Source: Phallusia mammillata
Lineage: Eukaryota
Direction of reading: 5' to 3'
NCBI GenBank assembly: GCA_965637545.1
Contig: OZ281498.1
Location: 4,774,001 to 4,838,000 of the forward strand
Length of the DNA stretch: 64,000 bases
Position numbers and translations under genes: made by a program. The notes beneath the pieces are model-generated. The model was not told the origin of the DNA. It saw nothing but the letters and a program-made list of their open reading frames with translations, and did no database searches. Shown here piece by piece: positions 57,401 through 60,400 of the stretch (position 1 is its first letter; every line of letters begins with the position of its first letter).

Positions 57401-60400
57401 AAGACAATAGACATTAAATCAGAAATTATATCGCTTAGATTAGATCAGTAGTTCTCAATTAGTGATCCATGATGACATTTAGGGTGGTCCACAGGACGTT
57501 AGTTAAATTTGCTGATAAACTGGAAATAGTTGCATCTAAGTTAAAGGCCGTTTTTTATTAGCTGTCAGTTGTTTGATATCACTCCTCAAAATTCTGTATT
57601 AAAGGGATATATTTTTAAACCAATATGCTTGTTGTGGATACTTTCTTTATCCTTACTTAACATTGGACTGGTCTGCAATATTTGTTTAATTGAACTGATA
57701 CTCCTTCGCTTGAAACGGGTGGGTGATGACTGAGTTAGATTTGCATGACTAAAATTTTTATGTTAGTATTTGTCTAATTTAGCAGTGCAATCTATTAATA
57801 CGAAAGTTTCATGCTAAAATGTTGCATTTTTTTAGGACAATGTCCAGTTTCAAGGGGACAAGCAGGAATTGGAAAAGAAGTTGCAAAAAGCTAAGAAGGA
57901 GCGACAGAATATTGACGGGCAAATGCGTGAGCTGCAAGATCAACTTGAGGCAGAACAATATTTCTCTGTAAGCAAAACATTTCCTGATCTTACAATTATC
58001 ATTCGTTGACTGCATGATTGTGTTTAAATGTCTCTGGGATAGTTTGTAACAGCTGTGTGTGTGGTTTAGGATCAAAACCTGGTCTGAGATATTAGGTTTT
58101 TTTTCAAATGCCTGAAGTGGTAGTGGGTATGAAAACTGATAAAAGTGTGTATGCCATGGATATCTGTTTTCAAAAATTATGTAAGTGCTATATTAGGTGG
58201 TAGGTGTACAATGTCTTTATTTGGCACTTTTTTATGATGTCATGAATTCCATTCTATGCCATTGTAATGAAATATTGTAGCCCGACAGGACAGAAAAGTT
58301 ACGGTGGTGTTTCTAGTGTAGTATCAGTGCTGCTTAAGTTGTATGGTTATTATTCTTTACTATTCTTAACGCAAGTAAATTTTGACTAGGGATTCATTTT
58401 TTAAACAGAACAAAAAAAGGGTTACCAACCTATGACTGTAAAATCCCCATTGAAAATCTTGACAATTGTTGTGTTTTGCTTGGCAGACTTTGTATAAGAC
58501 ACAAGTCAAGGAATTAAAGGAAGAAAAAGATGAAATGGAGAAAAATGTGAAGGGAGTGAAATACAACTTAGCTGTGATGCAAGATGAGAGGTATGTCATA
58601 CTATCTTACAAGTGTCAAAATATATTTTTATCATTACATTCCAGTAGTGTTACCAAAGTCTAACAGCACCAAAGGTGTAAATATATATTTTCTTACTTCA
58701 AGGTTAAGATGTAAAACTTGGTAATAGTTGTGCTGTGTGTTGGTTGTTGGTCATAATATTAAACTTTTTGATGCCTGTTACACATTGTAGAGGCCTAGAG
58801 AAATATAAATCTGTACAACTTGTCTTTTTAACCTTGTTTAATACTTGTATTATAGCCTCACCATAAAAATATAAATAAGTCATCCCTATCATCTGCTTTA
58901 AAGTCTTATATTTTGGTCACTACATTGCTGCACATTCAAATAAATGCATTACTTAAAAATGTTTGTCATTTTCTTAGATTTTTACAACTTAATTAACCAA
59001 GTGTGTTAAACTTCCTATCAAGTATGTATACTTGTCTGTTAAATTTGATCAATATTTTATTCTGTTTCACTGGCAGTTAATTCATAGTCTGTGAATGCAT
59101 TGTTTTGCCTGTTGATGTGTGTCTGTGGGCAGTGTTCCAATGTAGTAAGCCTAATGACCCAATGCTATGTGCATTCACATCACATTTTTCAACACAACCA
59201 TCACAGGGATGCAATTAAGGCCGAACTTTCAATGGCCTTAAGCAAGGCTGACCAAGAGCAGGTTCGCCGCCGTGGCATTGAGAGCGATCTCGCTCTAACT
59301 GAAAAACAGAGAATGCAGTTTGATCTTGAGGTGCGGGACCTTCAAAATCAACACCAAAGCGAGGTCGAATTCATCAAAAAGGAAATGCAGACTGTGAGTG
59401 TTGCCAATTTTTGGTTGGCTTCGTCACACAACAGAACACCACAACATGCACACACAGTACAGGTTGATCGCAAAATGCATATAATGGCATTGAATTATCC
59501 ATGATCTGTGGATGAAATGTCGGTGGCTGAATGTGTATGTGCAATGTTGACTGAGCGCTCGATGTGGTCCATGGTCTTGCTTCACTGTTATTTTCGACTC
59601 TTTTCTTTTCAGATTGAAAGTTTCCCATTTTTGTTACCTATTTTTTTACAGATTTATGGTAGCATGCTTATTTGTGTTGTACGCTATGATTTATTTTATC
59701 ACCCCTTTGGCACCCCTAGTGTTCAAAAATCCCCGATTTGCCAATCTAATGTGGGCCACATTCAGGGATACGGTTGTTACCCAACTGCAAATGGTGCAAG
59801 ACACCAACACCATCCTCGAGCAGTGGCGAGCGCATTACGAGCGAGAAATTGTTACCCTTCAACTAGAAAAGGTCGAGCTGGAAGGCAGCATTCGACAAAA
59901 ATCCTCCGAACACACTGACCAAATATCAGCAGTGAGTCCACTTGCATCTCCCAACCCACAACCAAACTCTAAAAAATCTTTCTCAGTAGTAATTTCTGCA
60001 CTTCTATTAATCTTAACCTTGCATCCACTGTGTAGAGAAGTAGCTTATTGGCTTGTGATGGGTCATTTTCTTGTGGTGAACTAGTGGCCATGAGCTGAGT
60101 AATTTGAATGGGGGTTTGGTAATGACATGTTTTCACTACCAGTACTAATTTTCTTGCTGTGTGTGTCGTTAACATACCGCGGTGGTGAAAAAAAAAACTC
60201 CCAGCTTGTTCAGCTTCTACTTTCTACTGAATGTCATGTATTGCCTGCCATTGGTAGAAAATCTAACTTGCTTTGCACAAAGGCAAAAAGTTTTTAAATA
60301 TAAAAAATTTGCAGTACATTTTTATGTTTTAATTCTTGAACCTAAATAATATTGTGTGTTTTTAGTTTTTTGGTTTGCTTTTCTGCATGTTAGAAACTCT

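Follow-up and report, generated by a model that had tools for sequence, protein, structure and literature searches.

The window analysed here is a stretch of 64,000 nucleotides from Phallusia mammillata (assembly GCA_965637545.1, contig OZ281498.1, positions 4,774,001 to 4,838,000 of the forward strand). From approximately 45.4 kb to past the end of the window, the plus strand is assigned, on the basis of its domain matches, to a gene for ROCK, a central regulator of actomyosin contractility. Pkinase matches are present in open reading frames (ORFs) with exons at 46836-47051 and 48195-48389, the latter scoring 45 bits against a cut-off of 31.7. The Pfam family Rho_Binding (PF08912) is matched at 61520-61675 with 58 bits (cut-off 23; profile positions 27-69). 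This is followed at 63765-63947 by a match to PH_MRCK, the MRCK/ROCK type of PH domain, with 33.7 bits (cut-off 27), and the window ends before any C1. There is only one Rho_Binding locus in the 240-Mb genome, and this is therefore the only ROCK gene of the animal. Between the coding regions for the Shroom-binding core and the Rho-binding domain, the gene contains two adjacent exons, termed A and B, which are used as alternatives to each other and encode different versions of the same part of the coiled coil.

The upstream constant exon (58487-58590) has a 3′ end of ...GATGAGAG, followed by a GT donor. Exon A is located at 59207-59393 on the plus strand and is 187 nt in length (62 codons plus 1 nt), while exon B is located at 59766-59931 on the same strand and is 166 nt in length (55 codons plus 1 nt). 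Both are preceded by AG, begin with the letters G GAT and are followed by GTGAGT. Both are of 3n+1 nt, running from phase 2 to phase 0, and the required frame is open throughout each of them. The next constant exon begins at 60931. Spliced models that contain both exons, or neither of them, undergo a frameshift and run into early stop codons. A preliminary description, made from the letters of the window, had proposed this pair; its coordinates, G GAT starts, GTGAGT donors, phases and next exon at 60931 all match the window sequence. Its claim that double inclusion breaks the frame is borne out by the early stops of the A plus B model, and the same is true of double skipping. The motif KADQEQVRR is missing from exon B, as had also been stated. 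Exon B occurs once only in the genome.

The use of the two exons was followed in RNA contigs of four sequencing runs from four studies (X1, X2, X9 and X13), which were compared with positions 58400-61100 of the window. As assembled contigs lose rare variants, all of the RNA evidence is to be read at contig level. The 5689-nt contig of X1 and the 5812-nt contig of X9 both join 58487-58590 to 59766-59931 and then to 60931-61024, with exon A skipped. The 3679-nt contig of X13 contains the junctions 58590>59207 and 59393>60931, with exon B skipped. Both junctions out of 58590 are present in X2, where the ends of A and B each abut the first letters of the exon at 60931. Exactly one exon of the pair is used in each case, this being B only in X1 and X9, A only in X13 and either form in X2. 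Every joint in the four runs is of the GT..AG type. The contigs run on into the exons on either side (57938-57967 and 61518) and therefore represent spliced mRNA. No joint from A to B is listed in the contigs of these runs, at a level where rare forms may drop out. Words of exon B are present in 12 of 18 listed runs of this organism, split by study, and the dominant isoform varies among samples. The two sets of junctions that the preliminary description had put forward as a check (58590>59766 with 59931>60931, and 58590>59207 with 59393>60931) are both present in the contigs. It had also been prepared to give up the pair if no junctions led into B and the frame of B was not conserved in relatives; B junctions are found in the RNA and the frame of B is kept.

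Two further observations concern the same contigs. At 59331, the X13 contig carries A in place of the G of the genome. The difference falls on the opening base of a GTG codon of exon A, would change valine to methionine and is probably an allele. In X2, low-depth unspliced contigs at 59364-59793 and 59902-60288 span the intron between A and B and the one that follows B; they are pre-mRNA or retained introns.

The comparison with relatives began from a word search with exon B, in which a single genomic ORF led to a 5.3-kb contig from another organism (L001) that is collinear with 56576-61602 of the window. L001 retains both exons along with their splice sites. The protein encoded by exon B is 93% identical between the two, with a dN/dS of 0.05 and a dS of 0.78, and that of exon A is 77% identical, with a dN/dS of 0.15. 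For reference, the protein of the exon at 57836-57967 is 100% identical to that of L001, and the introns have an overall identity of 45-63%. The dN/dS analysis of exon B in related genomes, which had been suggested as a check, thus gives a value of 0.05 against L001, with exon and frame kept. The exon pair exceeds chance, since the RNA contigs use the exact junctions of each exon and the dN/dS of B is 0.05.

An exhaustive search of 1.84 billion representative proteins returned 11 B-like ORFs, and a profile word search added another five. All 16 are short genomic ORFs that run into a GT donor. The contigs fetched for these relatives come from sequencing runs, long-read metagenome assemblies and TARA ocean plankton metagenomes. 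In eight more sequences at species level, B is preceded by an A-type exon, and the same-phase adjacency and frame rule of the pair also hold in the relatives. Exon B is 166 nt in all relatives found, with its splice sites retained. Over eight taxa, 22 of its 55 alignment columns are invariant and the mean column identity is 75%, with an invariant core of ..VQDTN.ILEQWR.HYEREI..LQL.KVE. The corresponding values for exon A over seven taxa are 1 of 62 columns and 53%. In one plankton species, exon A is hardly recognisable and too divergent for its length to be compared with that of B, and exon B is still 69% identical. In every relative where both are measurable, exon B is closer to the window than the constant exons 58487-58590 and 61518-61678, and it ranks among the most strongly conserved segments sampled in the coiled coil. 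These figures indicate that exon B is under strong purifying selection at the protein level, stronger than that on exon A. That B is far better conserved than A appears as the most striking feature of the locus, and it had been overlooked in the preliminary description. No B-like sequence was found outside this group in searches that would miss a 55-residue exon below about 45% identity and that did not extend to annotated full-length isoforms.

The length of exon A is less constant: the window and L001 share a length of 187 nt (62 codons), five relatives have 184 nt (61 codons) and one has 151 nt (50 codons). The difference between A and B is accordingly 21 nt in the window and L001, 18 nt in five relatives and -15 nt in one, where B is the longer exon. 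The two exons had been described as differing by exactly one heptad, which is correct for this species and its closest relative and does not extend to the others.

ROCK fragments bearing the B exon (L009-L011 and L014-L021) recur across the TARA ocean plankton metagenomes. A pelagic relative that is abundant enough to be assembled from this plankton is possibly a thaliacean.

It had also been proposed that the last 31 residues of A and B align in a meaningful way. This likeness did not survive closer comparison. There are four identities in the 31 positions (shuffle p 0.03-0.06), and shuffle tests of the two exons give p 0.016-0.055. BLASTP of exon A against exon B returns no alignment at E<=100, and a profile-profile comparison by hhalign of seven A exons with eight B exons gives a homology probability of 2%. 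Only the first 9-12 residues resemble each other (DAIKAELSM and DTVVTQLQM), with a post hoc p of approximately 0.0004-0.003. By these measures, A and B are without detectable homology. An origin by tandem exon duplication could not be demonstrated by any of the three approaches, BLASTP, the shuffle tests and hhalign.

The place of the swap in the protein was determined with ROCK1 numbering, anchored on an alignment with the human ROCK1 chain 4L2W and on the residue numbers of Mohan et al. 2013 (PMC3857177). The constant exon at 57836-57967 (plus strand), of which positions 57938-57967 are matched by an RNA loose end, terminates in ...LEAEQYFS and contributes QYF of the Shroom-binding core. The constant exon at 58487-58590 (plus strand), whose donor joins either A or B, contributes KTQ. 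The core motif QYFSTLYKTQ spans these two exons, and the second of them matches the Shroom-binding-domain chain 4L2W with an E-value of 0.03 from a query of 34 amino acids. The first residue of exon A corresponds to ROCK1 E886 and its KADQEQVRR to 898-KAESEQLAR-906. Exon A covers ROCK1 886 to about 947, where the C-terminal end assumes no more insertions or deletions. It spans the last 28 residues, or C-terminal third, of the Shroom-binding domain (834-913) and the link to the Rho-binding domain, which in ROCK1 starts at residue 947 (PMC13737125). This agrees with the earlier assignment of the region to the C-terminal part of the Shroom-binding domain. The constant exon downstream of the pair (60931-61024, plus strand) is entered through the junctions 59393>60931 and 59931>60931, and it should contain the start of the Rho-binding domain (profile positions 1-26), judging by the profile positions of the exon that follows. 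That exon, at 61518-61678 on the plus strand, encodes the core of the domain, with its start taken from an RNA loose end and its end predicted from the donor site. On this map, the main Shroom site and the Rho-binding domain should both be retained in a ROCK protein with exon B.

The introns around the pair contain conserved segments of their own. In the A-B intron, a block of 98 nt at 59477-59574 (plus strand) is 85% identical to L001, and a second block at 59588-59621 (plus strand) is 74% identical; the two introns that flank the A-B intron have an overall identity of 45-53%. The blocks within 59477-59621 form a candidate splicing-control element. The fold of the 98-nt block is nothing unusual (z -1.1), with no compensatory changes between the two sequences. 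No Rfam match lies within the three introns, and an inverted-repeat scan found no pairing common to the window and L001 of the kind that would suggest docking or selector sites. The pentamer GCATG, the Rbfox core motif, is located at 59662-59666 (plus strand), 100 nt upstream of exon B. All eight species tested have it in the A-B intron, which is true of only 7 of the 1024 pentamers, and a ninth species, L014, has it there as well. Besides the window, the A-B introns with GCATG are those of L001, L006, L007, L008, L012, L013, L014 and L022. Downstream of B, a block at 60476-60524 (plus strand) is 78% identical to L001, compared with 53% for the intron overall, and contains TGCATG at 60492-60497. 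These conserved intronic elements probably steer the choice of exon, perhaps through Rbfox-type GCAUG sites. It can also be observed that the block at 59588-59621 holds a strong acceptor-like sequence, TTTTCTTTTCAG, after which there is no conserved coding sequence.

The reading favoured here, with a probability of approximately three in four, is that A and B constitute a real and regulated mutually exclusive pair in the sole ROCK gene and that B offers a surface for a partner. Isoform A would be the canonical ROCK. Isoform B would keep the kinase, the Shroom core site and Rho binding, and would swap a fast-evolving generic coiled coil for a fixed module of 55 residues. Apart from a single short patch that is conserved, exon A behaves like any generic coiled coil. 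In exon B, a crude heptad assignment places 16 of the 22 invariant residues outside positions a and d. Seven of the 22 occupy positions b, c and f, which are fully exposed, and include the hydrophobic I16, L33 and V36, which by the same crude assignment adjoin W20 and H23. These exposed invariant residues fit a second seam at which a partner helix or another part of the molecule could bind, and they do not fit a plain spacer. The outward invariant residues would serve a partner as a docking surface, or make a contact within ROCK itself. Products that are out of frame would presumably be cleared by nonsense-mediated decay.

The preliminary description had interpreted the switch in a different manner, as one whose main effects are to adjust Shroom binding and to take one heptad off the coiled-coil "ruler", so that Shroom recruits ROCK less well or differently for apical constriction. 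This is considered unlikely, although a number of observations are in its favour. Exon A supplies the final 28 residues of the Shroom-binding domain, including the patch at 897-906 that is missing from B; both isoforms in this species have an equal net heptad shift; and the animal has a Shroom gene, as a Shroom ASD2 (Rock-binding, or SD2) domain is encoded by three exons at G000:C7:8204311-8205063 on the minus strand (L003-L005, 50-96 bits). Against this, ROCK1 850-QYF-852 and 857-KTQ-859 are required for binding of Shroom SD2, and the variants 900-ESE-902 and 900-ESEQLAR-906 have Shroom binding that is only slightly impaired (PMC3857177). The essential residues map to the constant exons, outside the swapped segment, which carries only the second conserved patch, ROCK1 897-906. 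This map thus gives no reason to expect Shroom binding to change greatly. Nor does the length difference lend weight to a ruler: A exceeds B by six codons in five relatives, and in one it is the shorter exon by five. Seven residues make up roughly 1% of the rod, or approximately 1 nm of some 100 nm, and with a one-heptad change that is not conserved, a ruler effect is therefore unlikely. Of the splice switch as originally put forward, the mutually exclusive ROCK pair stands as genuine and an effect of the shorter rod is unlikely. The Shroom and ruler model also leaves the higher conservation of B over A unexplained, and a new partner surface appears more likely than changed Shroom binding.

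It is also conceivable, though regarded as rather improbable, that exon B alters the response to RhoA by making the coiled coil directly N-terminal to the Rho-binding domain more or less stable or by changing its oligomeric state. The alternative exon stops approximately 31 residues short of the exon with the match to Rho_Binding positions 27-69, and under the crude heptad assignment the core of B is unusual, with N, R and K at position a and with Y at position d. The literature assigns a second Rho-interacting domain to this region. According to PMC13737125, the Rho-interacting domain and the Shroom-binding domain overlap, and C-terminal coiled-coil fragments switch between dimer and tetramer. 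Nevertheless, RhoA gave no further stimulation of full-length ROCK1 in vitro (PMC13737125), and the invariant exposed residues of B favour a binding surface over the tuning of stability. A reading in which exon B has no function in the protein, being mere noise of splicing, a "poison" exon that targets transcripts for decay or an artefact of assembly, could draw on the contig level of the RNA support and on run types recorded as "RNA?" guesses. It is essentially excluded: independent studies yielded contigs of 5.7-5.8 kb in which B is in frame and joined by exact GT..AG to both neighbours, its dN/dS is 0.05 while synonymous sites are near saturation, and all relatives found have retained both the 166-nt length and the splice sites of B.

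Several points weigh against a regulated pair with a partner surface on B. With RNA at contig level, neither the lack of A plus B and double-skip forms nor the use of B alone in a given run is proven, and the sample types of the runs are coded; a literature search for the sample accessions returned nothing. The exon boundaries in the other species are predictions, and nonsense-mediated decay of out-of-frame products is only presumed. Control by Rbfox is perhaps at work, and is to be taken as a lead rather than a result. The partner surface itself is suggested by the pattern of conservation and a crude heptad assignment. The exon B profile found no match in the PDB, and the protein atlas gives generic coiled-coil look-alikes only. 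In the same vein, a Pfam scan of exons A and B gave no match, and queries of the PDB with either exon or with the exon B profile returned only coiled-coil matches attributable to chance. A weak match of exon A to the ROCK1 chain 8P0S was rejected as a sign of orthology, as it falls in the HR1 region (residues 420-550; PMC13737125).

A more specific form of the docking proposal can be outlined tentatively, and in all of its parts together it is considered rather less likely than not. Exon B would be a clade-specific, probably tunicate, docking module with a partner at Q19, W20, H23, L33 and V36. It would provide a second targeting route that is independent of the second Shroom patch, with an Rbfox-type switch between the isoforms by tissue or stage. 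If this docking-module reading were true, splicing would do the work of the vertebrate ROCK1/ROCK2 gene duplication.

Other loci were seen alongside the ROCK gene. Exons of a MAP-kinase-like gene are found at 18465-20480 (plus strand), with motifs that by eye, from the ORF list, resemble MAPK15/ERK8. A large gene at approximately 30000-42000 (plus strand) has leucine-rich repeats, the P-loop of a Roc-type GTPase and a kinase; it is LRRK-like by eye, from the same list, and lies directly upstream of ROCK. Elsewhere in the genome, an exon at G000:C3:28480812-28481030 on the minus strand (L023) has a borderline match to glycoside hydrolase family 6 (GH6), with 26.7 bits against a cut-off of 27. 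This exon would fit a tunicate cellulose-synthase gene; to our knowledge, tunicates are the only animals with a GH6-type domain.

What is new is a well-supported splice switch in a much-studied kinase, in which, unexpectedly, the clade-specific alternative exon is the conserved one. The long coiled coil of ROCK is usually viewed as a poorly conserved spacer. Here, an alternative version of it is near-invariant across the clade, exposed positions included, while the canonical version drifts, and a candidate interaction site of 55 residues is marked between the Shroom-binding and Rho-binding sites. Ascidian embryos are tractable for the study of apical constriction, endoderm invagination and notochord morphogenesis, and they lend themselves to isoform-specific knock-down and pull-downs. 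As the two exons have no recognisable homology, catalogues of mutually exclusive exons that are based on similarity would miss such pairs. A literature search on ROCK or Shroom together with mutually exclusive exons, including Ciona, found no report of such a ROCK pair in any species, within a scope that excluded most subscription journals and genome-browser annotations. Both isoforms may already be present as unremarked gene models.

The closest known system is human ROCK1 (Shroom-binding domain 834-913; 4L2W, 5F5P; PMC3857177), with which the Phallusia gene shares the same Shroom-binding core in its constant exons. The second patch of exon A, KADQEQVRR, is at a position equivalent to that of ROCK1 KAESEQLAR, and in both proteins the segment in question forms a parallel coiled coil immediately N-terminal to the Rho-binding domain. 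Exon B, by contrast, is without counterpart in the ROCK1 sequences compared and has no match among solved structures.

Alternative splicing in the C-terminal coiled-coil region of a ROCK protein is not without precedent. Vertebrate ROCK2m, which Pelosi et al. are said to have described in 2007, is reportedly a tissue-regulated splice isoform that alters this region through a simple cassette insertion. That insertion reportedly lies at another position, and the ROCK exons described here differ from it in being an either/or replacement.

Exons 6a and 6b of tropomyosin are mutually exclusive exons that swap segments of a coiled coil; they are adjacent, share the same phase and are included one at a time. 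In this pair and in those of insect myosin, the swap of the coiled coil alters the binding of partners, and the exons are recognisable tandem duplicates of equal length. Mutually exclusive exons of the insect myosin heavy chain have been described (PMC2257972). The ROCK pair resembles both systems in that adjacent exons of the same phase are included singly and exchange a section of coiled coil while the rod is preserved. It departs from them in that exons A and B have no detectable similarity and are of unequal length, one of the two being length-invariant and the other variable.

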